A stretch of DNA of 64,000 nucleotides from Bispira polyomma (GCA_965649765.1 OZ287752.1:12958001-13022000), one strand, 5' to 3'; shown: positions 5,331 to 61,160, counted from the first letter of the stretch. A program made the numbers and translations. The notes: a model not told the origin generated them from the sequence alone.

Positions 5331-8300
5331 AAGACAAAATTTGATAGTGAATAGGAAGCAAATGTAATTTGTTCAGGTAAAGAGAGATTTATGTACGGAT
5401 CCACAGAAAAAAAAAATGATTCCACACAGATATTTTGAATAGGCTGTAACTTGTGGCGGCCATCTTGTTTCTGAAATGAGGACAAAGTTCAACAGAAGCA
5501 AGAATTTATAGCGATAAACATAGTTTGAAACTTGAAAGGTGAGGCTACCTGCAAAAGTTTTGAGAGCATTAATGAAGTATAATCTCTCTGCGCCTAACTG
5601 CATCTGAACAAAAGTATCTACCAGATGTCAAAGACATTATGGCTTGGTTTAAATTTTATGAAAAATGTATTGTCAGACACTTGGCCGTTGCAAATTTGGA
5701 GTTAAAAAAGTTCCACAGAAAATTCTATGTGCTTTTACAAATATAGTTTCAACTTACATTTTAAAATCTTTGGCAGTAATGCTCATTCAAAAGTTTAAGC
5801 CACTGCAAATTATCTGTTTCTACATGGTATTGACTTCGGGGTGTGAGGTGGTCTGACTTTGACTAGTGTTGAGTCTCTGTGGGTGGTACAATGATTAGGT
5901 AATTCAAGTACTTTGGTGCCAGTTAATTCTAACATTGGAAAATTACATAATTTCTTTCGAAGTTAATTATTATTTTAAAAACAATTTAGCAGTCAAAAAC
6001 AGAAGCATAAATGACTATGAGCTCAAATGCTGCTCTAATAATGATGCATGAAGTTCCAGGTAGAAGAGTTTGGCTTAATGGCTAAAAATGTTATTTAATA
6101 TCAAGATTTTACAACAAAGTATGGTTATATGTATGGCATATTGTCATCTATGAACAGACTGAGGTCCAACTATTATTTAAGTGCTGTAATATGTTATTAC
6201 AAAAATGTTTCTAGCATCTAAGTATCTAAAGTTATTATCCTTAAGTATATACACAGTTGCTATCATTGTTATATATGTTTCGGTTAAGTTCTGTTCTTCT
6301 GTACAGCTTTAGGTTTCAAGCAGCAATTCGTCAGTTAATAGCTTCATATGTCCCTTGCTGGAATCACAATGTAATACACATTTATAGTATCTGACTAAAA
6401 ATAATATGTTGAGTTAAGTCGATTTTAACAAATCTTTGCACACAAAGTTATAATATTTAGATATAATTATTTGAGGAGTAACCATTATGTGATGGCCATA
6501 CCTTCAAATCAGTATACTCAGCTATTGGTGTTGGTACTTCCGGTTTTGTCATCTCATAGTTGCTGATTCCATGTGTAGATGTTACATTTTCATATGTTGT
6601 TGGACTTTGATTCTAAAAAATATGTTACAATTAAATAACAGCATGTCACAAGAAGAAATGTAAGTAATGTAAATTTAATAGAGAAGATCACACATTGCAC
6701 AAACTCTGTTTTCAAAGATACAAGTGTTTTAAGCATAATGTTATGTTTTTTATGACTTACTGAAGTCCCTTTGGTGGTGTCACTATTGTGGTTTTGTCTC
6801 CTTCTCAACAAAACAATCAGTATAATTAGAGCACCTGTGAGTAAACCAACTATGGTAGACAGAACTGCTATTCCTGCTATTAACTTTACAGATATGCAGA
6901 ATGGGCTGAAAAAAGAACTTCAAAATAAAGGATTACAATTCTTAACAATAATCTTGTTAGATTTCAAATTAATACAAATTATGTACTTTTGTAGTGTAGA
7001 CATTTTCTTATCCCATGTGTCAGATATGTTGTCTTTCACAGGTAAACTTACTTTTGTCAGTTATTGTAAATTGCTGGGCTATTACTTCATCAGTATCCTG
7101 ATATATTTCAAGGTGGTACTCCTCCCTATCATGTACTACATCTACTGCATACATTGTGACACTGGCATCAATAATCTTGTAAATTGAAATGCAATCTTGC
7201 CGTCCATTGTAACACTTTAATAAAGCAGCTCTTGTGTAGTTTCCATCTATCTGTTCCCAGTAAAGGACTACAATATCTACATATATTTTTGCCTCCAATA
7301 TCCCTCTCACTAATGATAGACCTTTGATCAAGTAAAATACAAAAATATGATTCTAAGCTGAATCATGTAATGATCATATATGCATTTAAATGTATTTATT
7401 TGCTTGTATTTAAAGTGTTTGTTTATAACACTTCTTGACTCCACAAGTACAGCCAATCAGTGACTGCCATTCTGCTTAAGACTGCTCAAGACAGAGGATT
7501 AACAATTTATTATGCTGCAATATGACAGTCTTTAAAGTGGTACATCTGAGCCACTATTTATGTGCCTGTGCCTCAGAGCCCAAGGCCCTGGTCAAATTTT
7601 TATCATCCGTGGACCTAAGCAAGTGGGATACACACTATGCCACAGTGGCAAATTTTTCATGATATTATTTTCTTTAACTTGACAACGCCATTTGCTTTGG
7701 ACCAATTGGTGTCTATGGCATATACATATATACTACCATACAGCATATTAAGAATATAAACAATATGGAGAATGTATCCTTGTTTAGAGGCTCTTTGGAT
7801 AATAATATGCCTTGCTTTAATAATAATAGTGACATAACTAAATAGCTGCTGGTACCTAAAGTTGTTACTGATATCTCTGACTGGTAATCACTTTCTCCAT
7901 ATTGGTTTTGAGCTTGAACCCTAAAGAAGTACTCTGTATCAGGTAATAAATTTGACACTTTGTACATAGTTCTCTTGCTATGTTCATTTGTCTGAATCCC
8001 ATCATAATACAGTATTTTAGTGTCCCCTTGATGCCGGTAATATACTGTAAATGTTTGTGTTACTGGACTCCTGCCAGGGATCCATGACATAGTCACTGAT
8101 ATGGCAGTTATGGATTCAAATATAAAGGAATATGGTGGCTCAGGAACACCTGAAACACAAAAAGTAGGAAATATTTACCAATAGACATAAAAATATTACC
8201 AGTAGGTAATAAAGTAGTGAGAGATTAAGACATCTGAAAATCTGTGCTGTTCTGTTGTCATGGATAAATAATATACTGGTAATTACTGGCAGAGAGGGGA

Positions 8301-11300
8301 ATATCTATGTTAGATGCCATACAAAATATGCCCAGCAAATAATATTTGTATCAAATATAAACTTCATCTGACAGTGATATATATTCTTGATATAAATACC
8401 ACATACTTACTGTTTCTAAAGTAATTCAACTGCATATCAGTCGCTTGGAAAATGCAGTAGGACTAACAATTATGTTGCAATTCCAACCAGGTGGAAATGA
8501 CAAACAAATGTCCAAGATGACAACTATGAATATTAACTATTACAAATAGTCCTTCAACCAGGGGCTTAAACTGTGGACCAGTTGAACAAAGAAAGTTTCT
8601 TGGTAGCATCTTGGGTTTTTTTAATTCCCTGACTCTGTTTTTCTAGATGAAATCACAATACCTTTCCAGGATGCAAACAGAATAGATATTTTATGAATTC
8701 TAAATTAATCCAATTTAAAATTGGAGCATTGTAAATAATACCTCTTTCTAGTAACTCAAGTGAAAAACTAACAGGCTGTTGAATACCATTAGTCACAGTA
8801 ACTGTGTACTCTGTGTAGTCTTCTATTTGCACAGTATTTATCACAAGTTCAGAAATAAATACTTCATCACTCATTTTTCTCGAATTTACACCATCAGTGA
8901 TACTTGATCCACCCACTTTGCTCCAGATAAAAGCTGCTTCAAGGTCACTAAACTCAGGAAAAGCTCTCACTGTGACAATAAGGGTGACTTGTTGATTTAG
9001 TCCTGCATAGAAAACCACAGTATCTCTGCTGAGAAAAATTGGTGGATCTGAAGGTACAGTGATATAAATTTAGTACAGCAAATATAAAACACATAGTTGG
9101 ACATAGTAGACCAATCAATTCCAAGTAATTTCTACAGTGCATCTATACAGTTACTTACAATGTATAACAACCTGTATTCCTGCTGTGTCACTCCCCACTG
9201 TATTCCCTGCTGTGCATCTATAAGTCGCTGCATCAGTGTACACTGCCTTCTCTATTATCAGCTCTGTGTTCTCTCTCTGATCTGGTAGAGCCTGAGATGT
9301 GGTATCTTCATATTTAGGTTCAAACTCCCATAATTGGCTTGTGATTTCCTCAGGGTTACCAACCTTAATGTTACAGCGAATAGCAAGTTCTGACCCTTCT
9401 TCTGTGGTGATTGACGCAGTTTGAGCTGCTATGTCTGGAGGATCTGATTGAAAAGAACATTACAATAAACATTTAATGTAATACAAAATATGGTAATAAA
9501 ACATGAAATGATCAGAGTATAATTTTTGTAAATATTTTTTCTGCCATTTAACGGCAGAAACATTTTCAGATTACATCTAATGACCGGCAATGCTTATAGT
9601 ATAAGGCAAAGTTTTCCAATATAATGTGTCTTGTTTCATCTAAAACAAAAATCTAGATTGTACAACTAATAATTATTCATAATAAACAGTATTGCAGAAA
9701 TGTTATATGTTTAACATCACCCTAAATTCAACAGTTTTACTTTTTCTTCAGTAACTGTTTCAAGATACATCCTGGCTAATATACTTTTGATATTAAAGTG
9801 GGTTCAAAATTTTCTATGGGATGTGGTAAAAATGTGGTGTTAATAACATTACTATTAAGAACCTCAACATAATGTAGATGACAGGTAACATGTAGTTAGT
9901 GACTTTTTATTCCTAAAAGTAGAACATGAGAATAGGTTTACATGTCTTTTAATTCCAAAATATGTAATTATTCTATCACTATATAATTATAATAGATGAA
10001 ACTTACACAATACACTAATTTTCAGGCTTTCAGACATTAAATGTCCACCCTGAGAGCATATTATTGTCATCAACTCTGCAGTAAAACTGGTCTCCATCGT
10101 CATCCTTGTCAACAATGAGCTCATACTCCAGTGTCTTGGCTATCACCACTGCTAGATGTACAGTTGTTCCAAGTCTGAACAACTTTAATCTACCGGCATG
10201 ATTACTGTCTACTTCACAAGTCAAGGTCAACAGAGTATTCTCATTTACTGTTGAGGATGGAGAGGCTGTAGGTTTACTCACTGATGATGGTACATCTGGA
10301 ATTTGAATAGTAGTTTACTGAATAAGGCACAATATTACCCTGAAACCTATTATAAGCCTACTAATTGATATCAACATTTGGTATAGCAAACTTCAAGTGC
10401 AAAGGTATGATTTAAGTCTTCATGAGCATTCAATGTGTATTAGTTGTTCTGATTAGAGAACCATCAAGAGATGATAATATAAACAAAAGTTTATTGTAAA
10501 TGAGAAACTCCAGCTATTCCACCAACCAAGTCAAGGTCCATTATTTCGTCGATAGTGTGCACACTCTCATTAAAGTCACCCTTAAGTGACTTCAGTTCAC
10601 AAAAACACCCACTACTCTAGTTTGTGTTGTAGGCTGGGGGGCTATTGTGGTCTCTGTTATATATTAGACAACAGTTGACCAAATTGATAAAACATTAACA
10701 ACAGAATCTGTGGGCATTTAGTATTCTCGTATTTATCTTTATCTAGCATTGAAACCACTAGTTATTTTATTTTACTTCTGAACACTATCATTTATCCTCC
10801 ATTTACCATTTTTAAATTCCAAATTCTAGTCATGGAGCGATATAAGTGTAGTCATATCATGTACTTTTTATCATGGAATAGGAAAGGATTACCAGTCAAA
10901 TTAATATGCCAAGTCAGGCTGATGCTTAAAAAGTTGTATTCTACAAACCAGAATATGACCACTAGTATAAAACTACTTGGGACAAGTTCAAACCATATAC
11001 GGTGTCATAAAAAGATACAGCATCTCAGAAGAATGACATAAGTCAGGGGGACTTTTAAATCCATATGCATACCACCTGCCTGTGATAACATCCATGCAGC
11101 TAGGTATTGTGAACTGATAACTGAGGCCTTAGGCCCTAATAGTTTTTCCCACCCCAGAAATGTACCTACAGTCTCGAGAAATGTGGTTATTTGAGATAAA
11201 ATATTGGAGATTAATTAACTATGTGCTATGTGTCATATTAAAACAAGTACTATTTTCGGACAGAACTTAGAACTTGTAACAACCTTATACAATCACATTA

Positions 11301-12677
11301 TGACATCATATTTCCTGGTGTCAATATTCACCCATATACGCCATTTAAAGTTGCAATACTATTTATTAATTTGGCATTACCTGCTTCCTCGTTTTTATTT
11401 TGTTAGTTCATATTTGCAGGATATAGAATTTTGAGACATTTACACTGCTTTGTTGTTTATTGTCCTTGCTGTTTTAAATGTAATTTGTTATTAAGTTTTG
11501 AGTACATATGATTTTAAAACTGATTCTAGCGAGTCTATAGTTCATATATGCAACCATTTTGAAACATTTTATGTAAAGCACTACCTTGTTATTTAGTAGC
11601 TCTACATAGTCTTCATGAATATCATATTTTCATGATTTATCATGGTTATTAGACTCTTGTCTAACACACCACCAAGTGACATATTAGTTTGTGATGACAC
11701 TTACAAACACAATGTTCAAAGAATGAGTCCTCTCCTCACACAGGAAAGTTTTGTAAAACAACTTCATGACATACTACACATCCAGAGTTTCAGTGTTTGA
11801 TGTCTTCACTACTTTTATTGGTCCTTCACCCCAGGTTAATTCACACTGTACTCCTTGACCTTGCTGACCACGATTAAAGATCAGTGTATGTGTATAAGTC
11901 ACTGTATAGGTCAGTCCATTACTCTCGTTACTCTCTGTCTCAACACCTCCACTGTAGTGCATTACCTATGGTACTAAGGCTCACAGAATCCGGGGCATCT
12001 GGAAGTTTAGGAAAAATAAATATGTTAACTATTATACAATATGTTTTATCAAACAGATGTAATGATTGATAACTGTATTTAAATGATAACATGCTTTAGC
12101 AAATGATAAATTAAGTGTTTATATTTTGTTTAACTTTCAAAAAATTATTTTTATTAAGAAATCATGTTGGCTTAGATTTGGTATTTAGAAATATAGGCAC
12201 AATTGTAAGTTAACTTGGTTTAAAAACTTGGTTTAAATACTAAATAAAAAAGATATCTTCCTTTATATGATTATTTATGTACATACTCCAGGGGTTATAC
12301 TTTGGGTCCCACTTAAATTCCAAATATTTTATTAGTGACAATTAAGCTGTCTACTTAAAATTCATCACAACATATATAATGTTTGATAGTACTATTTTTA
12401 AAGAAGATTAGTTATAATAGTAATTTCTTGCAAAATTTCTTGTAAAATTCTATGAATTTTATAAAATGTACAAATTGCGATAAAAATGTGTTTCCTTAGA
12501 TTTTATTAAGTTGTAAACAGGTCATATTCCTATGCCTTGTTGATATTTCCAGTCTATGGTTTGCTACTGCAAATATATGAGGAAATATATGTCCCTTAAG
12601 GTAGAATACACACAGGAATTTGGATTGGTATTTAACACTTTTTTCATGTATATTGATTAACAAACAAAAACACTCAC

Positions 12678-13079
12678 CATATACTTTGTTATTTAAGTCC
12701 AGGTATTTATTTCCGTAATCCCCAGGCTGGTTTTCAGCAAAACATCTGTATCTAATGGCATCAGTGAGGATGTTCACCTCGGATATAGTCAGTCTGTGTG
12801 ACGTGTCTGTGTAAGTCCAAGTCACATCTCTGTCTTCTAAAGTTCCTCCTACCAGTTCGTTACCAGGTGCAACTGCTTTAGAGAAAAGGTACACTTCATT
12901 GTTTGTCTGACTGTTGTACCAACTAACATCATACAATTCAGCTTCACTGAGTCCATATTCACACACTAGAGTAACACTCTTACCATTCAGCAAATAGTAT
13001 GTAGACCCATCTCTGTAGTCCGATTCATAGTGAGTTGTCACATTGATTTTACTCAATATGACAGACAGTAGCGACAAAA
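12678..13079 (-). CDS. Copy A exon 2: open V-set Ig domain (class I)
   Basis: ttgcag acceptor, G|GTGAGT donor, 402 nt, phase 1-1. Motifs VTLVC...VSWY...HRLTISEVNILTDAIRYRC. Confidence 0.7.
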
Positions 13080-13586
13080 CTGCAAACATGAGTTTCAAAT
13101 ATTTAAGGCAGATATAAATTTATCCTGAACTGAGCCAATTAAAATGTGTTGTAACAGTAAATATGTTCCTGGAATGTCCATTTTTTGTTTAAATTCTGTT
13201 GAATTTGAAATGTGTCTTGCAATATTCTATCGTTTGTGAACTGTCCGTGTTTTGGTGGAAAGTGCATATCTTTTTAATGTTTACATATTTACGTTTGTTA
13301 AAAACCACACAATTTTCAATGCTAGGAAGTGTGGCTGTTATTAAGTGTGTGAATGGTTTACACAATTATTAGATACATGTACATACTTTATTAAAACTGA
13401 AAACTTGGATAATAAATTAGCATCTGTAAAAATATCAAAAATGATTAATTTTAAAAATTGTGTTTATGTAAATGTAAATAGGTTTCCTTTTGTATAACAA
13501 ATGGAGTTAGATTAATAAAAGTTAAATGAATAAACCATCATCAAAGTAAATCTAAAAAATGCACTAAAACATAAAATTGTACTTAC

Positions 13587-13620
13587 TTAATGAAATTATG
13601 TACTGATAATTTCCACACAT
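13587..13620 (-). CDS. Copy A exon 1: signal peptide start
   Basis: ATG TGT GGA AAT TAT CAG TAC ATA ATT TCA TTA A|GTAAGT splices in frame to give MCGNYQYIISLILSLLSVILS-KINV. Confidence 0.65.
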
Positions 13621-14422: not shown

Positions 14423-15431
14423 TTGATCCTTGTTGATAAATACTGTTCCCCTGATCATTATTCGTAAATACTGTCCCCCTGATCCTTGTTCATAAATACT
14501 GTCCCACTGATACTTTTTCGTGAATACTGTCCCCCCTGATCCTTGTTCGTGAATAATTTCCCCCTGCCCCCTGTTCATGAATACTCTCACCCTGATCCTT
14601 GTTTGTGAATACTGTTCCCCTAATTTTTGTTTGTAAATGCTGTCCCTCTGATCCTTGCTTGGTAATACTGTCCCCCTGATCCTTGTTTGTGAATACTGTT
14701 CCCCTGATTCTTGTTTGTGAATACAGTTCCTCTGATCCTTGCTTGTGAATACAGTTCCCATGAATTTTGTTTGTGAATACTGTTCCCCTGATTCTTGTTT
14801 GTGAATACTGTTCCCTCGATTCTTGTTCGTGAATACTGTTCCCTCGATCTTTGTTTGTGAATACTGTTCCCCTGATTCTTGTTTGTGAATACTGTTCCCC
14901 TGATTCTTGTTTGTGAATACTGTTCCTCTGATCCTTGCTTGTGAATACAGTTCCCATGAATTTTGTTCGTGAATACTGTCCAATGATCCTTGTAGATGAA
15001 TACTGTTCCTCTGATCCATGTTCATGAATACTCTCCCACTGATCCTTGTTCATGAATACTGTCTGTCTGATCCTTGTTCGATCATGAATACTGTCCCATT
15101 GATCCTTGTTTGTGAATACTGTTTCACTAATCGTTGTTCATGAATACTGTCCCACTGAGCCTTATTTGTGAATACTGTTCCCATGAAGCTTGTTCGGGAA
15201 TACTGTCCCACTGATCCTTGTAAATGAATACAGTTCCATTGATCCTTGTTTGTGAATACTGTCACCCTGATCCTTTTTCATGAATATTGCCCCCCTGATC
15301 CTTGTAGATGAATACTGTCCCAATAATCCTTGTTCATGAATACTGTCCCCCTGATCCTTGTTTGATAGTGAATACTGTCCCCATGATGCTTGTTTGATTG
15401 TGAATACTGTCCCATTGATCCTGGTTCTGAA
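14423..15431. repeat. Minisatellite, ~28-bp unit (GAATACTGTCCCCTGATCCTTGTTTGT-like)
   Basis: Contiguous degenerate tandem units without unique spacers. Confidence 0.95.
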
Positions 15432-17192: not shown

Positions 17193-20100
17193 TCAGTTGA
17201 TGGTTTCATATGTCACTTGCTGCAATGACAATGTATTACATATTGAAAGTAATAAGAATAACAAGTTGAGTTAAAAACGATTTTAACAAATTTTAGCACA
17301 GTAGGTTATGCTATTTGGATGCAATTATTTGAGGAGTATCAATGATGTGATGGCCATACCTTCAAATCTGTATACTCAGCTGGTGGTGTATGTTCCTCTG
17401 GTTTTGTCATCTCATAGTTGCTGATTCCATGTGTCGGTGTTACATTTTCATATGTTGTATGGACTTTGATTCTTGAAAATATGTCAAAATTAAATAACAT
17501 GCCACAAGATGAAATGTAGGTCATATAAACTTACTAAAGAAAAGAACACACATTGCATATGGCACAAACTATGTTTTCAGTGATGCAAGTATGTCAAACA
17601 TCATGTTATGCTTTTAAAACTTACTGAAGACCCTTTGGTGGTGTCACCAGTTTGGTTCTCTCTCCTTCTGAACAAAACAATCAGTGTAATTAGGGCCATT
17701 GTAAGAAAACCAACCACGGTAGACAGAACAGCTATTCCTACAATTAGTCCGGTGTCTTTCTTTACATAAAGATCTGCTGAATGGGCTGAAAAAGAACCTT
17801 AAAATAAAGGCTTACAATTCTAAACAATAATCTTGTTAGGTGTCAAATTAATACAAATTATGTACTTTTGTAGTGTAGACATTTTCTTATCCCATGGGTC
17901 AGATATATTGTCTTTCACAGGTAAGCTTACTTTTGTCAATTATTGTAAATTGCTGGGCTATTACTTCATCAGTATCCTGATATATTATAAGGTAGTATTC
18001 CTCCCCATCATATACTACGTCTACTGCATACATTGTGACATTGGCATCAGTAATCTTGTAAATTGAAATGCAATCTTGTCGTTCATTGTAACACTTTAAT
18101 AAAGCAGCTCTTGTGTAGTTTCCATCTATCTGTTCCCAGTAAAGGACCACAATATCTTCATATATTTTTGCCTCCAATATCCCTCTCACTAATGGTAGAC
18201 CTTTGATCAAGTAAAATACAAAAATATGATTCTAAACTGAATCATGTAATGGTCATATATGCATTTAAATGTATTTATTTGCTTGTATTTAAAGTGTTTG
18301 TTTATAACACTTCTTGACTCCACAAGTACAGCAAATCAGTGACTGCCATTCTGCTTAAGACTGCTCAAGACAGAGGATTAGTAATTTATTATGCTGCAAT
18401 ATGACAGTCTTTCAAGTGATATATCTGAGCCACTTTTTTGTGCCTGTGCCTCAGAGCCCAAGGACCCTGATCAAACTTCTGTCATCCGTGTACCTAAGCA
18501 AGTGGGATATACACTTTGCCACAGTGGCAAATTTATACACGATACTATTTTATCTAACTTGACAACCCCATTTGCTTTGGACTAATTGGTGTCTATGGCA
18601 TATACATATATATTATATCTCTGGCTGATGATCACTTTCTCCATATTGGTTTTGAACTTGAACTCTAAAGAAGTACTCTGTATCAGGTAATAAATTTGAC
18701 ACTTTGTACATAGTTCTCTTGCTATGTTCACTGGTCTGAATCCCATCATAATACAATATTTTAGTGTCCCCTTGATGCCTGTACTATACTGTAAATGTTT
18801 GTGTTACTGGACTCCTGCCAGGGATCCATGACATAGTCACTGATATGGCAGTTATGGATTCAAATATAAAGGAATATGGTGGTTCAGGAACACCTGAAAC
18901 ACCAAAAGTAGGAAATATTTACCAATAGACATAAAAATATTACCAGTAGGTAATAAAGTAGTGAGAGATTAAGACATCTGAAAATCTGTGCTGTTCTGTT
19001 GTCATGGATAAATAATATACTGGTAATTACTGGCAGAGAGGGGAATATCTATGTTAGATGCCATACAAAATATGCCCAGCAAATAATATTTGTATCAAAT
19101 ATAAACTTCATCTGACAGTGATATATATTCTTGATATAAATACCACATACTTACTGTTTCTAAAGTAATTCAACTGCATATCAGTCGCTTGGAAAATGCA
19201 GTAGGACTAACAATTATGTTGCAATTCCAACCAGGTGGAAATGACAAACAAATGTCCAAGATGACAACTATGAATATTAACTATTACAAATAGTCCTTCA
19301 ACCAGGGGCTTAAACTGTGGACCAGTTGAACAAAGAAAGTTTCTTGGTAGCATCTTGGGTTTTTTTAATTCCCTGACTCTGTTTTTCTAGATGAAATCAC
19401 AATACCTTTCCAGGATGCAAACAGAATAGATATTTTATGAATTCTAAATTAATCCAATTTAAAATTGGAGCATTGTAAATAATACCTCTTTCTAGTAACT
19501 CAAGTGAAAAACTAACAGGCTGTTGAATACCATTAGTCACAGTAACTGTGTACTCTGTGTAGTCTTCTATTTGCACAGTATTTATCACAAGTTCAGAAAT
19601 AAATACTTCATCACTCATTTTTCTCGAATTTACACCATCAGTGATACTTGATCCACCCACTTTGCTCCAGATAAAAGCTGCTTCAAGGTCACTAAACTCA
19701 GGAAAAGCTCTCAGTGTGACAATAAGGGTGACTTGTTGATTTAGTCCTGCATAGAAAACCACAGTATCTCTGCTGAGAAAAATTGGTGGATCTGAAGGTA
19801 CAGTGATATAAATTTAGTACAGCAAATAAAAAACACATAGTTGGACATAGTAGACCAATCAATTCCAAGTAATTTCTACAGTGCATCTATACAGTTACTT
19901 ACAATGTATAACAACCTGTATTCCTGCTGTGTCACTCCCCACTGTATTCCCTGCTGTGCATCTATAAGTCGCTGCATCAGTGTACACTGCCTTCTCTATT
20001 ATCAGCTCTGTGTTCTCTCTCTGATCTGGTAGAGCCTGAGATGTGGCATCTTCTAATTTAGGTTCAAACTCCCATAATTGGCTTGTGATTTCCTCAGGGT

Positions 20101-23966: not shown

Positions 23967-24068
23967 AACTGGAATGTATATAGTATTTTTTATTTATTTT
24001 ATTTTAGTTTGTTTTTAGTTTTATACATCCAGTCATTATTTATGTATAGTGTGATCCATAAGAAGAAA

Positions 24069-44700: not shown

Positions 44701-47700
44701 TTTACAAAACTCCTGCCGGCAATCTATGACATAGTCACTGATATGGCAGTTATTGACTCAAAAATAAAGGAATGTGGTGGTTCTGGGAAACCTGAAACAC
44801 ATGCAATAGAAAACATTTACCAATAAACATAAGTAACACTAAAAATGTTAGTAATTAACCATATTAAAACTCAGTATGAGGGATTCGTTCACTACAATTT
44901 TGTATCGTTCTGTTAGCATACACAAATGTCATACTGGCAATTACTGGCATGTGGTAACGAGAAACTAGTGTCACTGATCACAACTACGAATGATAACTAT
45001 TACAAATGGTCCATTAACCAGGGGCCAAAACTGTTCACCATTTGTTAAAAAAAAGCTGCCCAGTCGAATATTTGTTTGTTTAAAGTCCCTGACCCTGGTG
45101 TTCTAAATACAATCAGAATACATTTGCAGGATGGAACAGATTACATATGTTATGAACCCTAGAAAATTCAATTTAAATATTGACCATAGTGAAACAAACC
45201 TCTTTCCAGTAACTCCACCAAAAAACTAACAGGCTGTTGAATACCATAAGTCACAGTAACTGTATATGCTGTGTAGTCTTCTATTTGTACAGTATTTATT
45301 ACAAGTTCTGTAATAAATACTTCACCACTTGTTTTTCTTAAATTTACACCATCAGTGATATGTGATCCACCCTCTTTGCTCTAGATAAAGGCTGCTTCCA
45401 CATCACTAAACTCAGGAAAAGCTCTCACTGTGACATTAAGAGTGACTTGTTGATTTAGTCCAGCATCGAAAACCCCAGTATCTCTACTGAGAAGAAGTGG
45501 TGGATCTGTAGGTACAGCGATATAAATGTAGTACAACAAATGTTAAAGACATAGTTGGACATGGTAGACCATTCATTGCAATGTAATTCCTACAGCACAC
45601 CTATATAGTTACTTACAATCTACAACAACCTGTATCCCTCTTGTATCATTCTCCACTGTATTCCCTGCAGTAAATCTATAAGTCCCTGCATCAGTGTACA
45701 CTGCTTTCTCTATAATCAGCTCTGTGTTTTCTCTTTGATCTAGTAGAGCCTGAGATGTGGCATCTTCATATTTAGGTTCAAACTCACAGAATTGGTTTGT
45801 GATTTCCGCAGGATTACTAACCTTAAAGTTACAGCGAATAACAAGTTCTGATGCTTCTTCTATGGTGAATGATGCATTTTCAGCTGCTATGTCTGGAGGA
45901 TCTAATTGAAACAGAAAAAAGAACATTACAATAAACATTTAAGTTAATACAAAATATGGTTATAAGACATGTAATGATCAGGTTATAATTTTTTAAAACA
46001 TTTAACGGCAGAAACATTTGCAGATCTATTACATCTGATGACCTGCAATACTTACATTATAATGAAAAGTTTTAAAATATAACGTGTGTTGTTTTATTGT
46101 TGCTAAATTCAACAGGTTTACTTTTTCTTCAGTAACTGTTTCAAAATAATTCCTGACTAATAAACTTTTAATTGATGTGGAGTTTACTATGGGATGTGGT
46201 AAAATATTGTGTCAATGACATCACTATTTAGAAGCCCAACATGATATGAATGACAGGTGACATGTAGTAAGTGACTTTTCATTCCTAAAAGTAGAAAATG
46301 AGAATAGGTTTACATGTCTATTAAATCCAAAATATGTAATTCTTCCAGCACTATATAATTATAATAGATGAAACTTACACAATATACTAATTCTCAGCCT
46401 TTTAGACTCAACATTAAATGTCCACCCTGAGTGCATATTATTGTCATCAACTCTGCAGTAAAACTGGGCTCCATCATCATCCTTGTCAACAGTGATACTC
46501 CAGTGTTTTTGCTATCTCTACTGCTAGATGTACAGTTGTTCCAAGTCTGAACAACTTTAATCAACCTGCAGGATTACTGTCTGCTTCACAAGTGAAGGTC
46601 AACAGAGAGTTCTCATTTACTGTTGAGGATGGAGAGGCTGCAGGTTTACTCACTGATGATGGTACATCTGGAATTTGAATAGTACTTAAATGAATAAGGC
46701 ACAATATTACCCTGAAAACCATTATGAACCTACTAATTGATATCAACATTTAGTATAGCAAACTTCGACTGCAAAGGTATGATTTAAGCCTTCATGAGTG
46801 TTCAATGTGTATTAGTTGTTCTGATTAGAGAAACATAAAAAGATGGTAATATAAACAAAAGTTTATTGTAAATGAGAAATTCCAGCTACCACACCAACCA
46901 AGTCAAGGTCTGTTATTTCGTCGATAATGTGCAGTCACCCAGTTAAAGTCACCCTTAAGTGACTTCAGTTCACAAAAACACCCACTACTCTAGTTTGTGT
47001 TGTAGGCTAGGGGCCACTGTGGTCTCTGTTATATATTAGACAACAGTTGACCAAATTGATAAAACATTAAGAACAGAATCTGTGCTCGTTGAGTATTCTC
47101 ATATTCATCTTTAGCTGGCATTCAAACCACTAGTTATTTTATTTTACTTCTGAACACTCATTTATCTTCCATTTACCATTTTTAAATTCCAAATTCTAGT
47201 CATGGAGCGATATAAGTGTAGTCATGTCATGTATTTTTTATCATGGAATAGGGAAAGAGTACCAGTCAAATTGATATGCCAAGGCAGGCTGATGCTTAAA
47301 AAGTTGTATTCTACAAACCAGAATATGACCACTAGTAGAAAACTACTTCGAACAAGTTCAAACTATATACAGTGTGTTAAAAAGATACACCGTCTCAGAA
47401 GAATAACATAAGTCTGGGGGACTTTTAAATCCATATGCATACCACCTGCCTGTGATAACATCCATGCAGCTAGGTATTGTAAACTCATATACAGGAAAAA
47501 TGCCTGACTGAGGCCTCAGGCCCTTATGCACTTCCCCACCCCAGCAATGTACCTACAGTCTCGAGCAATGTTGTTATTTGAGATAAAATATTGGAGATTG
47601 ATTAAATATGTGCTATGTGTCATATTAAAACAAGTACCATTTTCGGACAGAACTTAGAACTTGTAACAACCAATATAGAAAGCCTTATACAAGCACATTA

Positions 47701-49024
47701 TGACATCATATTTACAGGTGTCAATATACACCCATATACACCATTTAAAGCTGCAACACTATTTATTAATTAAGCAATACTTGCTTCCTCGTTATTATTT
47801 TGTTAGATCATATTTCCAGGATAGGTTTTAAAAGCCCCATGAAAAGGACATTATAAACATTTTATGTAAAGCACTACTTTGTGATTTGGTAGCTCTACAT
47901 AGTTTTCATATCATATTTTCATGTTTTATCATGGTTATTAGCTTCATGTCTAACACACCACTAAGTGACATATTAGTTTGTTGATGACACACTAATAAAC
48001 ACAATTCTTAAAGAGTGAGCTCTCGCCTCACACAGGAGAGCTATGAAAAACCACTTCATGGCATACTTACAGTACACATCTAGGGTTTCAGTGTTTGATG
48101 TTTTCAATACTTCGATTTGTCCAACACCCCAAGTTAGTTCACACTGTACTCCTTGACCATGCTGACCACGGTTAAAGCTCAGTGTCTGTATATAAGTCAC
48201 TGTATAAGCTAGTACATTACTCTCCTCACTCTCTGTCTCAACACCTCCACTGTGGTACTCACTTCCTACTTGTATTCTGAAGTCTGCCTTCATTTTACCT
48301 GGATAGATGGAGGACACTCTACAGTGGATAATTTGGGTTGCACCCTCAATTACCACTACCTATGATAGTGAGGCTCACAGAATCGTAATTGTAATGTATA
48401 AAAATAAAAATCATAATATTTTATTTGATGTGACATTGTGGATTAATAAAAGCAATGTTAATATAAATTTTGACGTATATACTATTATACTGCTTCATAA
48501 AACATATTTTTATAGAATAAGAATAGTTTAAAGTAGAGCTACTGTACCCCATATTTTCCCAGTCAAATCCAACGCATTATTTCCTTCATATAGGTCTGGA
48601 GTCTGTATATAACAATGATACTGTAAACCATCGGTCAGTATGTTCACATCATTTACGGTCAGCCTGTGTTCTGTACCTTTGAACTCGTACTCTACATCTC
48701 TCCCAATGAACTTATTCACCAATTGACTCCTGTTCTGTGGTCCATAGTAAGTAAACACACGATGTGAAGTAGCTTGACTATACCAGTCAAGTGTTCTTAT
48801 GTCACTTTTAGGTAAACCAGAATCACAAACTAGGGTCTTTGAGTCTCCGTGTAAGATGTAGAAAGTAGAGCCAGAACTGCAAGGACTTTCATAGTGAGTA
48901 CTCACTGATACTTCTGCATATACTACTGACCTCTCTGAAATGACAAGTTTATGTAGAGTTATTAAGCATATTTGCTAGCTTCACTGAATACACATGTGTG
49001 TACATGTATACGTTGAGTAATATT

Positions 49025-52000
49025 ATTATTTTTTTTTTTATTTTTGTCCTCATTTACATTATAATTACATACATTGTTTTCATACATAGAATATATAATT
49101 ATGGTTTCTTTTGTTACGGCTAAAGCCTATACATTTACATATTATTATTAATCCTCCTGACCAGGCAACTATTTAACTGTTCTAAGTTAAAGTCAAGAAA
49201 CCATATATTGACTTAATACAGAACTTATTTGTTTTCCATTTGTTCACTTTTACACTAGACAACACAGTGCCACATTTTGTCAGAGGCATTTTACTTGTAG
49301 TTTACAGAGAGAAGATTGGCTCCCACTTAATCCAAGATGTTTTAAATTTTTCTGCCTTATCCTGCAGCTGACATATTAAGAATTCATCGCAGTATAGCGC
49401 TTTTAATTTCTGTTTTAAGGCCTTTAAGGAGAGTCTTCCATTTTGATTGGTGGAATCAAAAATACACTTCTTTACTGTCATAATTAAAGCATTCACAGGG
49501 ACATTATTTTGGTCGTTCAACTGGTAGCCAAAGATTATTGTAAAGTCAGTAAAATTGACCTTAACTTTTATGATTTCATTTATATGTTCCGCAATAATTC
49601 TCCAAAACTTTTTTATTTCAGAGCATTCAACAAACATGTGCATCAAGGTTTCGTTTTCCATATTCCATCTAGCACAATGTGTATTATCAACAACATTTAA
49701 TTTCTTTAGATAGTTTCTCGTAGCTATCAATCTGTAAATTATTTTAAGCTGAAACCAAGTCAGACTATTATTGGTAATTGTCTTAAAGCAAAATCTAAAT
49801 ATGGCCCTCCAAGTTATATCGTTAATGTTTGTTTTTAAGTCAATATTCCATTTTAGTTTCATGTTATGGTTGTTTGTATCATTTATATTTAAGCATCGAT
49901 AAAAATCTTGTGCTAGATTTATACAAAATTTTGGAGTGACCAGGGAGAAAGGGTCTTTTAACTATATGACCTGTATTTATCCTTTTTCTTTTGATATATT
50001 CTTTGACATTGAGTTTCATTTGATGATATTGTAGATAGTTCTTCTTATCGAGACTGTAAATGTCTTTAAGTTTATCTAATGTCAAGAAAGATCCTGATTT
50101 ATTCAAAATGTCAGAAATTATCAATATTCCACTTTTAAACCATTCTGGTATTATAAGGGTCACACTTGATATTTCACTAATAAACCATAAAGGGCTTGCC
50201 AGTGCCTCCTCGTCTGTAAGCGCATGCTGGTTAATCAAAGATTCCCAGGCCTCGAAAACTTCTATCCAAAAAAATGTTTGAGATTTTTCCTTTCACATAC
50301 TTTAAATGAAGTTTTCAACCTTTTCATGTATACTAGCTTTGAAAAAGTCAACCTACGGGGAATTTGATCGAAGCAGTCTACGAAACCATGTGACCTTAAG
50401 GAAATTTATAGATTTTACCAATTTTATCATTTTTAGGCCTCCAATATTGTTGTCCAATGAAAGTACACTTCTGTTTATCTTGTCTGGTTTGTTATTCCAT
50501 ATAAATTTAAACAAGATAGAATTTAACTGGTCCAATAAAGATTCCTTTGGCATTGGTAGGCTTAACAATATATGATTGAGTTTAGCCAGTAGAAAGGTCT
50601 TTACAACAGTTATTTTACCCATTGGGGTCAAATTCCTTTTATTCCAGTAGTTAATACTGCCCTTGATTTCAAGAATTTTTGAGTGGTAGTTTAGTTTTGG
50701 CATGTGATCCAAATCGACAGAGAAGATCAAACCCAAAAGATCAAAAACAGTTACTCCCCAATCGAATAAACCCTTAGATAGTTTATCTTTGGAATGTCTT
50801 TTCTTACCAATCCATATTAATTTAGTTTTATCGGTGTTGATCCTTAAACCTGAGATTGTTCCAAAAATTTCGAGTGTGTTTAAAGCTGCTTCAAAAGAGA
50901 CATCGGTCCCATCCAAAAATAAGGCAGTATCATCAGCAAATTGTGTTAGTCTAAATTCGGTATTACCTACAGATAAACCTTTAATTTTTGGATTATTGGT
51001 TATTAAGAGACTTAAGACCTGGGTTGCTATTATAAACAAATAAGGTGATATAGGATCACCTTGCCTACAACCTCGTTGGATTTCAATAAAGTCTGACATA
51101 AAACCACTTTGCAAAATTGTTGCTTTGATATTATTATTAAAAAGGTAGATCCAATTCAAAAATTGTGGACTGAATCCTAAACAGCTTAGTATTTTGTACA
51201 AAAACTGCCAAGAGATAGAATCGAAGGCCTTTTCAAAATCTATCAACATAAGTAGCCCAGATATGCCATTGCTTTCTGCATAATGCATTAGGTCGTACAC
51301 TAAACGTGTGCATTCTCCTATGTATCTTCCTGGAATAAAGCCATTCTGACTATTATCTATCAAAAAATCCAAGACTGGTTTAATTCTATTTGCAATAACG
51401 GCTGAGGCTAATTTATACACTACTGACAGCATTGATAGAGGATGCCAGTTTTTTAGGTACTCTTTAGGTTTGCCTTTTTTTGGAAGGCAAGTATTTACAC
51501 ATTGTCTTAATGATAGCGATAGAACACCTTTTTCAAAACTGAAGTTTAATGCAGGTAATAATCAGTTTCCAAGTGACCTCCAGAAAACTTTAAAAAATTC
51601 CGCAGGAAATTCATCAATACCTGGTGTTTTGTTGTTTTTCGTATGTTTCAAGGCATTGCTCAATTCATTATAAGTCAGTGGGCCTTCCAAGGATTTAGAC
51701 TGTGTTACAGTAAGCTTTTTGGCCTTATAAGTACCAAGTAATGTGTCAAGATCAGTTTTTTTGAGTTGGTCATCTCTGGAATGAAACAGCCTACTATAAA
51801 ATGATTTTAATTCATTTAGGATCTCTTTCTGATGTGTCACCAGAACACCATTAGCTTTTACAACTCTTTTTACTGTCTTTTCAATATAGTTTTGATGTTC
51901 GAGAGCACAAAAGAATTTGGTAGGTCTTTCACCTTCAACTAGCCATTGAACCCGGGATCTTATCTTTTGACCTTTTAAGGCCTCATTTCTTAGGATCTCA

Positions 52001-53976
52001 AGTTCTTGTTTTTTACCATTTATCAAATCTAAATTTTCAGGTGTTTGACCTTCTAACTGTTCAATTTCACTTACAAGCAGTGTTTCCGCTGTGGCGTTTT
52101 TACGTTTTTTCAAACTTGAATATTTAATGGTTTCTTCTCTTCTTCTAAGTAAGAGCGTCTCTAGAAAAAGATCATCAGGGATTGTTAATTGTTTTTCACT
52201 AACTGCGATGTGGGAGAAATTTTCAAAGTTATACACTGGGATGGCATACTTAAATTCTTCTTAAAGAATATATTTGTTAATCAAGCACAAATAGTCTTTA
52301 TCTTTCAATAAATGACAGTTTAGCTTCCATAAACCCTTTCCTCTTTGAAATTTATTTATTAAGATGTGTATTTGTACCATTGAATGATCTGACCTGTATC
52401 CAGGGTTAATATCTACTGCACTTATTAAATCAGTTAAAGATGAAGAGACAATGATATAATCCAATCTGGCTTGTTTAATAGGATTTTTCTTGCGCCAAGT
52501 ATAACGTCTCATTTCTGGATGAAGATAGCGGAAAATATCCACCAAATTGCGTTTTGTTATAGTATTTAGTACTAGATTTCTATTTTTAGGATTGTTCAAA
52601 TTGACTTAGTTGTAGCTGTCCAAATCGGGGTCCAAGATCAAATTAAAGTCCCCACACCAAATAACATAATCTTGTTCAGATTTGTCCATGTAGTTTTCGA
52701 CTGATGTAAAGAATGGCTCATTTTCTGTGTTTGGGGCATATATATTAATTAATCGGATCTTAATATCGCTTATTTTTATATCCAGTATAATCATGTTGGA
52801 TTCCTCGTGACCTTAATGACCTTTAAAATTTTGTATTCAAAATTATTTCGAAGCAATATTGCCACTCCTTGTGCATTACTACGATCACCATTTAAAATTA
52901 TATCTCCATCCCAATAATTCAAAATATTTGACTAGTCCGATTTAACTAAATGTGTATCTTGTAAACACACATAATATTTACCATCGTATCTTTTAGATAG
53001 TTTAGGACATCATATCTCTTTTCCTTACTAGCTAGTCCGTGGCAATTTAGGGATATTAACTTTAGTCTTTCTCCCATTCTATAATTATTGTACATATTAA
53101 CCGATAACCATAAGTGGGAGCCGCTACACAAATTGCTTCTAGAAAAACTAGCTGTTTCAAATGCCTCAGCTGGAAATGTAAGAACATGTTATTTGTAATA
53201 TTATGATTATTTATGAGCTCATGTATAATTACTTCATACACATACAAAATCAGTTTCAACAAACACGTACCTTGGCTATACTTTTCAAGTGCTTGAATGA
53301 TACTTTTGCAGTTGACTGCAACCCTGTATAACTCAACATTTTCTATGTTATAAAAGTGTAACAAACTTAATGTAATAGAGGACATTTGTATAACTTGATT
53401 AAAAATATATACACTTAAACATACAAAAATAAAAAAAAATTTAAAAATCAGTACTGACAGAAATATATGTGAGTTACTGTATATAACATAATAAGGCCAG
53501 GTTTCCTATCAGGCATTTTTAAACAGAATTATCTTAATAATCCTTTGGAAATTAAATGTTATTGTCAACATCAGTCCAACTTGACTGTAAATGAAAGACA
53601 AGATATTCTGAAACTTACTCTATATAATGTTACATTTCATTGACATGCAGACACTAGTAGTATCTACTTAAGCTTTAATGGTTTATTTTACTTCGCCAGT
53701 ATATTGTTAACTAAACGCTCTATTTCGATCTAGTGTTCATTTCTGCTACCTATATATTATGTAAGCATGCCTGATGGAGATTGTTGTTATACAGACATCA
53801 GTATTATGCACATACTTGTATATATATACAAAAATTGGTCAAAATTATATACGAGTCCCCAGTTAGGTTGCCATTTGCTGTAACAGTAATTATGACCGAA
53901 TAAACTGAATAGGTCTTGTGTTAATTTAAATACTTTATTCTACAACAAAATATTTTTTTATACTACCATGTCTAAT
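49025..53976 (-). mobile_element. L1/Tx1-clade LINE, decayed ORF2, no ORF1 seen
   Basis: APE endonuclease (SLNCHGL, INIYAPN, CGDFN, RLDYI, SDH), RT (IDFEKAFDS, RQGDPISPYLF, QFADDT) and a C-terminal Cys/His motif. Poly(A) at ~49025-49045. 16-bp TSD tacgttgagtaatatt at 49009-49024 and 53977-53992; empty site in copy C ~40220. Confidence 0.93.
49302..53100 (-). pseudogene. LINE ORF2 (EN-RT), fragmented
   Basis: Seven collinear ORF fragments in the ORF track between 49302 and 53131. Confidence 0.88.
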
Positions 53977-54375
53977 TACGTTGAGTAATATTGATCATAT
54001 AGGACAATACATGTAAAAATATTTACCAATCTTAAAATTAACACAAATAAATGAAACACAACACACATCATTAGATGGACTATAAATTATATGTTATCAT
54101 ATATTAATTACTCACCACTGAAAAGTGTAAGCCAAAACAGCCATTGGACCATCATATTTACTGATTAAGAAATTATAGAAAAATATTCACATTATTAGAA
54201 TACATAAGTCTATGTCCCTCAATGTGTGTGGTGAAGGTACATGTATTATGTTATACGTGGAACAAATAAGGAAGTTATTTCATAAATACTGGATATCCAA
54301 AGGAGTACCTTTATGTCAATAGGAATATGAAGAGGGCAAATGTTATACTTGACTCTTTGATATCTATACAAATGT

Positions 54376-56869: not shown

Positions 56870-59800
56870 TCAGTTAATTGTTTCATATGTCACTTGCTGC
56901 AATGACAATGTTATTCTATTTGAGTTAAAGTAATAAGTTGAGTTAATATCAATTAAAACAATTCTTTGCACTCGAGTTATGATATTTAGATATGATTGTT
57001 TGAGGAGTATCAATTATTTCATGGCCATACCTTTAAATCTGCATACTCAGCTGGTGGTGTATGTTCCTCTGGTTTTGTCATCTTATAGTTGCTGATGTCA
57101 TGGGTAGATGTTACATCTTCAAATGTTGTTGGACCTTGGTTCTTCAAAATATGTCACATTTAAATAACAACATGTTACAAGACATAACTAATGTAAAAAT
57201 GCCCAAACAAAACTAGTATGTAAGTGTATTAAAGATAATGTTGTGCTTTTCATGACTTACTGAAGTCCCATTGGTAGTGTCATCATTTTGGTTCTGTCTC
57301 CTTCTGAACAAAACAATCAGTACAATTAAGGCAACTGTAAGGAAACTAACCATGGTAACTGATATTGCTGCTATTGCTACAACATCTGCAGAAGTGGATG
57401 AAAAGGAAACATTAAACCTTACAAGGCTTATAGTTCTAAACAATAATGTGTTGAGTGTTAAATTATATACTTTTGTAGTGTAAACATTTTCTTTTCCTAT
57501 ATTACAGATATGTTGTCTTTCAGAGGTCAACTTACTTTTGTCAGTTATTGTAAATTGCTTAGCTGTTACTTCATCAGTATCCTGATATATTACAAAGTAG
57601 TACTCCTCTCCATCATATACTGTGTCCGCTGTATATTGTAACATTGACATCAGTAATTTTGTAAATTGAAATGCAATTTTGTCGTCCTTTGTAACACTTT
57701 GATAATGCAGCTCTTGTGTAGTTTCCATCTATGTGTTCCCAGTACAAGACCACAATCTCGTCATATATGTTTGCCTTTAATAACCCTCTCACAGATGGTA
57801 GACCGTAGGTAAAGTAAAAATAATAACTACATGTCTAAGGTAAATCCTGTAATGGTGATTCCTTCATATTTGCTTTCAAATGTATTTATTTACTAGTATT
57901 TAAAGTGGTTTCATGACTCCTCAAGTACATCAATATCATAAAATAGCATATTTAGTATATAAATAATATGGAGAATATATTCTAGTTTCATAGTCCCTTG
58001 GTCAAAAATACATTGATTGAACAATAATAGCTGCATAGCTAAATACAGGCTGGTACCTAAAGTTGTAACTGATATCTCTGGCTGGTGATCACCTTCCCCA
58101 TATTGGTTTTGAGCTTGAACCCTAAAGAAGTACTCTGTATCAGGTGATAAACTTGACACTTTGTACATAGTTCTTTTGCTATGTTCACTGGTCTGAATTT
58201 CATCATAATACAGTATTTTAGTGTCCCCGTGATGCCTGTAATACCCTATAAATGTTTGTTTTACAAAACTCCTGCCGGCAATCTATGACATAGTCACTGA
58301 TATGGCAGTTATTGACTCAAAAATAAAGGAATGTGGTGGTTCTGGGAAACCTGAAACACATGCAATAGAAAACATTTACCAATAAACATAAGTAACACTA
58401 AAAATGTTAGTAATTAACCATATTAAAACTCAGTATGAGGGATTCGTTCACTACAATTTTGTATCGTTCTGTTAGCATACACAAATGTCATACTGGCAAT
58501 TACTGGCATGTGGTAACGAGAAACTAGTGTCACTGATCACAACTACGAATGATAACTATTACAAATGGTCCATTAACCAGGGGCCAAAACTGTTCACCAT
58601 TTGTTAAAAAAAAGCTGCCCAGTCGAATATTTGTTTGTTTAAAGTCCCTGACCCTGGTGTTCTAAATACAATCAGAATACATTTGCAGGATGGAACAGAT
58701 TACATATGTTATGAACCCTAGAAAATTCAATTTAAATATTGACCATAGTGAAACAAACCTCTTTCCAGTAACTTCGGTGAAAAACTAACAGGCTGTTGAA
58801 TACCATTAGTCACAGTAACTGTATACACTGCGTAGTCTTCTATTTGTACAGTATTTATTACAAGTTCTGTGATAAATACCTCATCACTTGTTTTTCTTGA
58901 ATATACACCATCAGTGATATGTGATCCACCCTCTTTGCTCCAGATAAAGGCTGCTTCAACATCACTAAACACAGAAAAAGCTCTAACTGTGACATTAAGA
59001 GTCACTTGTTGATTTAGTCCAGCATAGAAAACAAGACTATCTCTGCTGAGTAGAAGTGGTGGATCTGAGGATACAGTGATATAAATCTAGTACAACAAAT
59101 GTTAAAGACATAGTTAGACACATCCCCACTACATTCCCTACAGTACATCTACCTAATTACTTCCAATATACAACATCATGTATTTATCCTGTTTCACTCA
59201 CTATTGTATTCCCTGAAGTACATCTACCTAAGTACTTACAATGTACAACAACCTGTATCAGACACCACTGTATTCGCTACAGTACATCAACCTAATTACT
59301 TACTTTTTACAACAATCTGTATCTCTCCTGTATCACTTCCCACTGTATTCACTAAAGTACATCTACATAATTACTTGCAATGTGCAACGTTTGGGATTTC
59401 TTCTCTATCACTCCCCAGTATATTTCCTGGAATACATCTACATAATAACTTACAATGAATGTATAATAATCTGTGTTTCCCCTGTATCACTACCCACTTT
59501 ATTCCCTGCTGTACATCTATAAACCCCTGCATCAATGTACACTGTACTCTCTATCACCAGTTCTATATTCTCTCTCTGGTTTGGTAGAGCCTGAGATATG
59601 GCGTCTGTATATTTAGGTTCAAACTCCCAGAATTGACTGGTGATTTCCACAGGGTTACCAACATCAATGGTATAGCCAATAACTAGCTCTGATCCTTCTT
59701 GTAAGGTGTCTAATGCACTTTGAGCTGATATGTCTGAAGGATCTGTTTAACACAGAGAAAGGAACATAAAACTAAACCAAAATAAAGTAATGGTAGCACA

Positions 59801-61160
59801 ATAAATATAGTTTTGGTAACACCAGCGACTATGTAATTCATGTTTTACTGTATAATTTTAACAGACCAAACTTACATAATACACTATTCGTCAGCTTTTC
59901 AGACTCATCTTATTCATATTCCCACCCCAAGTACAGATCATTGTCATCAGCTCTACAGTAAAACTGGGCTCCATTATATATCATCCTTGTTAACAGTGAG
60001 CTCATACTCCAGTGTTTTGGCTGTCATCTGTGTTAGATGTGTAGCTACTCCCTGTCTGTACAACCTCAGTCTACCTTAGGATTACTGTCTACTTCACAAG
60101 TCAAGGTCAACAGTGTATTCACAATCACTGATGACGATGGAACAGCTGTAGGTTTACTCACTGATGTTGGAATATCTGAATAATGTATAGTATTTAAAAG
60201 TAAAATACATTTTAGTGAAAAAATCAAATAAGTTTTGTCAAACCCATATAACCCTCTGAAACTATTTATTCACAATATTTCATACTGCAATACGTAGACT
60301 GCAATCTACAACGTTCTTAAGCTTGCTTTGATTATATTAATAACATTTTTACCCAGCACACAATCTGTCACTTTTATGCATAACCAATATAAATTGCAGC
60401 ATGTAGAGTCACCTGAAATACAGATTTGTAAAAAACATAGTATGCTTTGAGTGCAAGTAACAAACATTCTACAATGCCAATATTATTTCTGTTGTGTCAT
60501 AGATGTATATATAATATATCCACGCACTTCTATACTTTCTATAATTATAGTATAATCCAGGGTTTCTATGATGTTTTCACTATTTCTATTGGTCCCTCAC
60601 CCCAGGTCAGTTGACATTGTACTCCTTGACCTTGCTGACCATGATTAGAGTGTATGTGTATAAGTCACTGTATAAGTCTGCCCATTACTCTCCTCACTCT
60701 CTGTCTCAACACCTACACTGTAGTAGTCACTACCTACTTTTTCTCTATAGTCTGTTGATTCTTGACCTTGATAGATGGAGGACACTTCACACTGGATGGT
60801 TTTGGGTGCACCCTCAAATACAATACCTATTATAGAAAGGCTCACTGAATCTGGGACAACTGAAATAAATATGATTATATGTAATATATATTTCAAACCT
60901 TTCAATGTCACAATATAAAACAAAAGATTTTATATGATGTAACATTGTAAATTTCAAAAGTAAAACTCAAACTTATTTCCTTGTTGCAGGATTGGAGTAT
61001 CTACACAACATAAAAATTGTACACCATCGGTCAGTATGTCTACATTATTTACAGTCAGCCTGTGTTCTGCACCATTGAACTCATACTCTACATCTCTCCC
61101 AATGAACTCATTCTACAATGTACTCGACTTGACGTAGCTAGATTATAGCAGTCAAGTAAT
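56870..61160 (-). pseudogene. IgSF receptor copy E, most degraded; V exon only a fragment (~61017-61160), leader not found
   Basis: Exons 3-11 recognisable, with frameshifts in exons 3, 4 and 8 and TAG in FN3. The V remnant is class-II-like. Confidence 0.82.
59115..59520. repeat. Tandem ~78-bp repeat (about 5 units) built from the 3' end of Ig exon 5 plus its splice donor
   Basis: On the minus strand the units read tagatgtac..gggaatacagtggg..gatacagg..ttgtacatt|gtaagtaatta. Confidence 0.75.

Follow-up and report, generated by a model that had tools for sequence, protein, structure and literature searches.

A candidate inhibitory-type recognition receptor from a large birth-and-death immunoglobulin superfamily complex of Bispira polyomma

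Large, positively selected clusters of immunoglobulin superfamily (IgSF) genes with inhibitory tails are known in vertebrates, Hydractinia and Botryllus. The vertebrate SIRP, CD33-related Siglec, CD300, LILR/KIR and NITR families evolve by birth and death and combine a positively selected V-type tip with a tail that carries an ITIM (immunoreceptor tyrosine-based inhibitory motif) and an ITSM (immunoreceptor tyrosine-based switch motif). In vertebrate paired receptors, gene conversion shares ectodomains between twins of opposite signalling, and the activating twins have a charged transmembrane residue and use DAP12 or FcRgamma. The multi-megabase Hydractinia Alr complex contains genes with a V-set tip, a fibronectin type III (FN3)-like domain and tails with ITIMs or ITAMs (immunoreceptor tyrosine-based activation motifs), together with pseudogenes and exon shuffling (10.1101/2022.03.04.482883). 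In Botryllus, the fester family and FcoR comprise more than 35 germline-encoded IgSF receptors of variable copy number, with intergenic recombination and with ITIM versus hemITAM tails (PMC12582321). Oyster CgNCAM1 (three Ig domains, FN3 and two ITIMs) binds microbes and recruits SHIP2, so signalling from an Ig-FN3-ITIM receptor to SHIP2 works in lophotrochozoans (PMC11841013); with CgIgIT2 (PMC11999971), it represents lophotrochozoan Ig or Ig-FN3 receptors with ITIM or ITAM. No such annelid family was found described in the literature searched, the coverage of which was incomplete. Here we examine a 64,000-nt stretch of Bispira polyomma DNA (OZ287752.1; C5:12,958,001-13,022,000 in a genome of 1.035 Gb), referred to as the window, and its one intact IgSF gene, copy C. 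On balance, we favor the view that copy C encodes a single-pass, inhibitory-type recognition receptor from a large, germline-encoded, birth-and-death IgSF family with a function in defense or self/non-self recognition.

Self-comparison of the window revealed five related units on its minus strand, copies A to E, arranged head to tail in the number and at the coordinates given by an earlier, sequence-only reading. That reading had also singled out copy C as the only one with a full 831-aa open reading frame (ORF), and the gene model agrees with it. Copy C (40395-33520, minus strand) has 11 exons with introns that are all GT-AG, and its spliced 2496 nt encode 831 aa and a stop in a frame without internal stops; A, B, D and E are each broken by several frameshifts, stops or lost splice sites. 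The description of the array as five 11-exon copies of one gene stands only in part: the units are related, but A carries another V class, B has no V exon, D has a duplicated FN3 exon and E has no exon 1. All Ig and FN3 exons of copy C are in phase 1, and the predicted layout is a signal peptide, a V domain, four further Ig domains, an FN3 domain, an FN3-like domain, a transmembrane segment and a tyrosine-bearing tail. The exons are as follows.

40356-40395, minus strand: exon 1, start codon and signal peptide; 90% identical in copy D.
39759-40145, minus strand: exon 2, V-set Ig domain, C50-C121 (Pfam, fold model, profile, selection test).
39235-39555, minus strand: exon 3, Ig2, C1/C2-like (splice model, Pfam).
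37182-37475, minus strand: exon 4, Ig3 (splice model, Pfam).
36335-36619, minus strand: exon 5, Ig4, I-set (splice model, Pfam).
35920-36225, minus strand: exon 6, Ig5, without cysteines (splice model, Pfam).
35031-35324, minus strand: exon 7, FN3 (splice model, Pfam).
34234-34503, minus strand: exon 8, FN3-like domain, Cys pair conserved; diagnostic of the family (fold model).
33927-34087, minus strand: exon 9, uncharged transmembrane helix and basic stop-transfer (splice model).
33687-33797, minus strand: exon 10, tail with TTYENV (ITSM), YEM and EYTDL (motif match, conservation).
33520-33546, minus strand: exon 11, eight codons that include the ITIM VTYETI, followed by the stop (size and tyrosine kept across subfamilies and in a second species).

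The array was checked against three short-read DNA runs, which represent at most two samples and possibly one individual. Contigs of the three runs match copy C exactly, with a depth of 15-18 in one run; in that same run, the depth is 35 for a contig that equals A as well as B, versus 15-18 for the C-specific contigs, or about twofold. Being DNA data, the runs contain genomic joints and no splice junctions. The exact matches and the doubled depth indicate that the window copies are real. An assembly artefact was ruled out, as the copies are 80-97% identical with distinct insertions and the contig shared by A and B has twice the depth of C.

The exons of copy C were searched and folded singly. 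Each of exons 2-6 gave an Ig match in Pfam, and exon 7 matched fn3 (E 3e-12). The exon 2 model is a V-set fold with strands A', B, C, C', C'', D, E and F (predicted local distance difference test score, pLDDT, of 71, with poor ends); its top structural matches are VHH/VH domains, and the domain retains the canonical C50, W64 and C121. Its profile gave weak matches to T-cell receptor V domains, butyrophilin and Sidestep. Exon 8 has no Pfam match, and its model is a confident FN3-like sandwich (pLDDT 90) with a tenascin FN3 domain as the top structural match (TM-score 0.65, E 2e-3). Long matches of the exon 8 profile were set aside because they consist of many short stretches, the one inspected being a frog FN3-repeat phosphatase. 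In the searches made, no named homologue was recovered with the V exon, the exon 8 profile or the kinase-like exon described below. The transmembrane segment spans approximately aa 746-770 and is uncharged.

Selection was examined by comparing codon site models M1a and M2a on 6-7 paralogues per exon, some of them pseudogenes. The V exon gave a strong signal (2dL=25.8, p=3e-6), with omega of about 4.7 on 13% of sites, and the comparison was not significant for exons 3-8 and 10. Under M0, omega is near 1 for V and for exon 8; exons 6-7 are under purifying selection (omega 0.26-0.32). The V signal persisted when pseudogene D was omitted (p=2e-6), when the four local copies were taken alone (p=0.006) and in each half of the exon on its own tree (p=0.03 and 6e-4). 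The supported sites, in protein numbering, are T61, Q82, Q84, Q120, S122 and P126, located on strands C, C'' and F and in the FG loop of the model. Because they alternate around the core residues W64 and C121, the selected sites face outward on GFCC'C'' in the fold model. GFCC'C'' is the usual ligand-binding face of V domains, in homophilic and heterophilic interactions alike.

The tail of copy C contains four tyrosines, in TTYENV, SNYEMR, AEYTDL and VTYETI. With ITIM defined as [ILVS]xYxx[ILV] and ITSM as TxYxx[IV], the first is an ITSM and the last an ITIM, and two or more such matches occurred in 0.3% of tail shuffles (p=0.003). The tyrosines of YENV, YEM and EYTDL are present in most copies read, including a distant subfamily at 19.0 Mb and a second species. 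The last exon elsewhere again has eight codons, the fourth of them for tyrosine, before a stop at codon 9 (QMTYEAIS, HAPYESVG, HIHYDNIN, HVTYEVIG); copy C ends in ETIN and its relatives in EAIS, EVIG and DNIN. This conservation of the tyrosines is in line with the inhibitory-type tail proposed from the sequence. An ITAM within the copy C tail was ruled out, the YTDL-x4-YETI spacing being too close.

The family has at least 70 copies, of which the window array makes up a small share. Genome matches number 73 for the FN3 exon of copy C, 70 for exon 8, 49 for the tail exon and at least 146 for exon 3, mostly within C5:10.6-27.4 Mb, with outliers on C2, C4, C6, C9 and C11; the adjoining 90 kb hold several further copies, mostly broken. 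Outside this genome, the exon 8 profile matched only unnamed, exon-sized proteins in ENA assemblies. One of these, ERZ22147071, represents the second species; its megabase-sized host contigs hold many copies built in the same way, with five or seven Ig domains, and across the family the number is five to seven. A further subfamily, at C5:20.6-22.4, 25.0 and 27.4 Mb, comprises many genes in which exon-3-like Ig exons stand several in tandem, with about 50% identity to exon 3 of C. Our sequence comparisons support a lineage-restricted, germline-encoded family evolving by birth and death. The lineage-specific birth-and-death locus suggested by the sequence-only reading is thus borne out, on a larger scale than stated (70-73 FN3-exon matches in the genome, and exon 8 elsewhere only in ENA assemblies), and in place of a conserved single-copy orthologue we found 70 or more copies.

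The copies are mosaics. The nearest neighbor shifts along the gene: for copy C, it is D at V (93% identity) and B at exon 8 (98%). The identity between D and E is 99% in exon 7 and 79% in exon 5, and that between A and B is 96-100% in exons 4-7 and 85% in exon 9. A spacer with a 28-bp minisatellite was duplicated as one unit with the flanking gene parts, a tail on one side and the head of the following gene on the other, the pattern expected from unequal crossover. Exon swapping also extends to more divergent relatives. The contiguous gene at C5:70.654-70.673 Mb has V, Ig2 and Ig3 exons 74, 87 and 71% identical to those of C, with homologous introns, followed by two extra Ig exons, a stalk with about 33% identity to that of C (29-40%), an uncharged transmembrane segment and a different tail. 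At C6:14.47 Mb, the same head stands on four tandem C2-type Ig exons and the same alternative tail; these four exons (C6:14.4747-14.4762 Mb) are near-identical with a period of 391 bp, a very recent change in stalk length. The clusters at C5 17-25 Mb are described by their coordinates and identities: at C5:17.0-17.55 Mb, stalks 75-84% identical to that of C bear exon 3 copies 30-83% identical. Different heads therefore occur on one type of stalk and tail (A versus C) and one head type on different stalks and tails (C versus C5:70.65 Mb). As the identities of stalk and head to copy C diverge within the same genes, head and tail evolve separately, as judged by sequence comparison.

In the alternative tail, two tyrosine motifs form an ITAM-like pair, YEVL-x12-YQDL or YEQL-x11-YTDL, whose spacing exceeds the x6-9 consensus. 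The next exon at C6 starts IVIYETIR, in the same phase as the last exon of C and sharing 14 consecutive nt with it. By pattern recognition, this 57-aa exon continues into sequence that resembles a degenerate kinase N-lobe with a Gly-loop and VxVK. It has 10 close genomic copies, most of them just downstream of divergent FN3 exons.

C6:14.47 Mb; C5:18.47, 18.61, 18.76, 18.90, 19.34, 70.65 and 70.69 Mb; C2:91.10 Mb; C9:24.42 Mb: kinase-like exon copies.

Pfam, PDB, Atlas and homologue searches with the 57-aa exon were all blank, and a genome-wide PF07714 search gave no match at these loci among the best candidates scored, which is uninformative. The first eight codons of the kinase-like exon match the terminal ITIM exon of C, and the short tail possibly arose by truncation. 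We tentatively entertain, as a possibility that is less probable than its converse, a 17-Mb germline complex in which selected V heads would be shuffled between ITIM/ITSM receptors and receptor pseudokinases with ITAM-like tails. The short tail would derive from a stop that arose long ago after eight codons of the kinase exon, and the terminal ITIM would be the kinase juxtamembrane tyrosine. If true, a receptor kinase would have supplied the basis of this paired-receptor system, in place of DAP12-type adaptors.

The four broken copies and other features of the window are as follows.

6331-13620, minus strand: copy A, pseudogene; own signal exon at 13620-13587, frameshifting deletions in exons 3, 4 and 9.
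17193-23703, minus strand: copy B, pseudogene; exon 1 of the A type, interrupted by a stop; V exon deleted.
42384-54155, minus strand: copy D, pseudogene; C-type exon 1, intact V exon 93% identical to that of C in nucleotides.
56870-61160, minus strand: copy E, pseudogene; exon 1 missing, V reduced to its 3' half, exons 2-5, 7 and 8 with lesions.
23756-29401, plus strand: DIRS/Ngaro-like retrotransposon with 211-bp direct repeats that are 98.6% identical, about 50 nt upstream of the B start codon.
14424-15394, no strand: 28-bp minisatellite of the B-A spacer, belonging to the duplication unit (self-comparison).
30127-31759, no strand: 28-bp minisatellite in the C-B spacer, homologous to that in the B-A spacer (self-comparison).

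The V exon of copy A (13079-12678) is intact and belongs to a second V class, 35% identical to the V of copy C, and its stalk exons 4-8 are 91-97% identical to those of C. Copy B further has a stop and a lost donor in exon 7 and a +1 frameshift in exon 10. Copy D has lost the exon 3 acceptor, bears frameshifts and stops in exons 3, 4, 6, 7 and 11, and has its FN3 exon in duplicate (44791-44498 and 43957-43668). In both A (13620-12678) and D (54155-48548), the signal and V exons are intact despite their pseudogene status. From the sequence, these heads could be gene-conversion donors or yield secreted V-only products; we set the latter aside, as the chance of intact heads given the number of lesions is roughly estimated at ~0.16.

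The element at 23756-29401 has gag-like, reverse transcriptase (RT) and recombinase-like ORFs, the last of which had no Pfam match and is presumed to be such from familiar motifs. It is a recent insertion, given the 98.6% identity of its direct repeats. A degraded second DIRS-like element lies at 196-4517, with RT (PF00078), RNase H-like and recombinase-like ORFs, and DIRS-like elements with long open frames are present within introns of family members (among them C5:70.6636-70.6682 Mb). Intron 1 of copy D contains a long interspersed nuclear element (LINE) on the minus strand (~49030-53980; RT PF00078, E 5e-28, and zf-RVT). A repeat of ~250 bp, like a short interspersed nuclear element, is present in very high copy (summed contig depth ~1e6) at 37703-37957 and 3432-3680; it is found in intron 3 of C and not in A, B or D, and has a 74% identical relative in the second species.

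For the function of copy C, we infer the ligand, the cell type, the phosphorylation and the sign of the signal. The V face would bind a fast-changing ligand, which may be a pathogen, a parasite or a polymorphic self molecule, and the stalk would keep the V head away from the membrane. A Src-family kinase would phosphorylate the ITSM and the ITIM, and an SH2 phosphatase of the SHP2 or SHIP type would be recruited to dampen activation of the cell. Chimeric relatives that combine the same head with the YxxL-x11/12-YxxL tail and the kinase-like exon may have an opposite or different output. The genome contains 38 SH2 matches, counted as a domain class and not as individual SHP2 or SHIP orthologues, which accord with such recruitment. 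Other points weigh against the proposal. The selection tests were run on a small number of sequences, and conversion between the 7 paralogues, of which some are pseudogenes, can inflate tests of this kind. Tandem tyrosine motifs are also present in adhesion receptors that bind Nck, nephrin among them.

The last point leads to a neural-wiring or cell-adhesion code, which we regard as unlikely. Here, an expanded family derived from nephrin or sidestep would specify cell identity in the nervous system or in sensory or filter organs, its tyrosines serving to dock adaptors of the Nck type. The architecture is indeed like that of Side (five Ig and FN3) and nephrin (PMC10084454), the C2-type Ig exon of a relative matches SYG-2 (E 1e-8) and the V profile has a weak match to Sidestep VI (E 0.3). 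However, such families are usually stable in number and under purifying selection, whereas here most local copies are dead, heads are swapped, V is positively selected and the protein ends in ETIN, with no PDZ-binding motif at its C-terminus.

Allorecognition proper also appears rather improbable. It would make the V tips polymorphic allodeterminants that bind homophilically, like Alr1/Alr2, for fusion/rejection or self-incompatibility, and the selected face is a usual one for such contacts. The overall layout is also that of the Hydractinia Alr complex (10.1101/2022.03.04.482883). Yet profile searches, as distinct from direct alignment, found no sequence relation to Alr, and V keeps the Cys pair and Trp that many Alr domains lack. 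Moreover, the diversity is between paralogues, not alleles, the perfect matches to C in the three DNA runs coming from what may be one individual.

Another, still less probable explanation is a decaying array under relaxed selection, in which copies pile up by unequal crossover and C is the latest survivor without special function. Four of the five window copies and most in the next 90 kb are broken, and V and exon 8 have an M0 omega near 1, as decay would predict. On the other hand, a site class with omega of 4-5 is confined to V, exons 6-7 are under purifying selection, and the tail motifs and stop position are retained in the second species. Gamete or species recognition, with sperm-egg interaction driving the selection in a broadcast spawner, is very improbable: a positively selected surface tip is typical of gamete recognition proteins, but 70 or more paralogues with inhibitory-type tails are not.

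We return to an inhibitory-type recognition receptor as the favored reading. With 70 or more genes, a mapped hypervariable face, a conserved ITSM/ITIM tail and swapped heads, the family members are candidates for self/non-self recognition or pathogen tracking by a lophotrochozoan without adaptive immunity. Copy C, as an intact member, is directly expressible and testable.

Compared with known systems, Sidestep and nephrin/SYG-2 are, by sequence, the probable source clade of the family. They share an N-terminal V-like Ig domain, C2-type Ig domains and a membrane-proximal FN3 (PMC10084454). The resemblance to sidestep/nephrin-type proteins in the sequence-only reading accordingly holds for the V-like Ig domain and the FN3 layout, but it is weak. 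Sidestep has five Ig domains and one FN3, whereas copy C has five and two FN3-type domains and its relatives seven Ig domains; nephrin has nine Ig domains and FN3 and is invariant with few copies, in contrast to five to seven Ig domains, 70 or more copies and many pseudogenes here. The C-terminal PDZ-binding motif of Sidestep and nephrin (PMC10084454) is absent from copy C and its relatives, and a single-copy Side or nephrin orthologue was ruled out by the 70 or more copies and the lack of a PDZ end. With Alr, copy C shares the broad layout of a V-set domain 1, I-set domains, an FN3-like fold and a single transmembrane segment. No homology to Alr was detected, however, and the exon 8 profile finds no named cnidarian protein; the present family differs in its five to seven Ig domains, two FN3 domains, canonical Cys and Trp and the sharing of heads with a kinase-like tail. 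The Botryllus system is likewise a germline IgSF family with recombination between genes and differing tails, but FcoR combines Ig-like and sushi domains in gene pairs, whereas here there is an Ig/FN3 stalk and no partner gene in the window. The oyster CgNCAM1 and CgIgIT2 are described as single genes with another domain order, not as a positively selected complex of 70 or more genes. Like the vertebrate clusters, copy C has a conserved ITIM and ITSM and selection on the V ligand-binding face; in contrast to them, no charged residue occurs in the transmembrane segments read, and the alternative tail brings a tyrosine pair of its own along with a kinase-like exon. The vertebrate paired receptor clusters and the copy C family are of independent origin, and the latter would be another independent origin of paired-receptor logic. 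By analogy, the copy C family looks like one that works as the Alr, FcoR and SIRP/Siglec/LILR clusters do while being a member of none of them.

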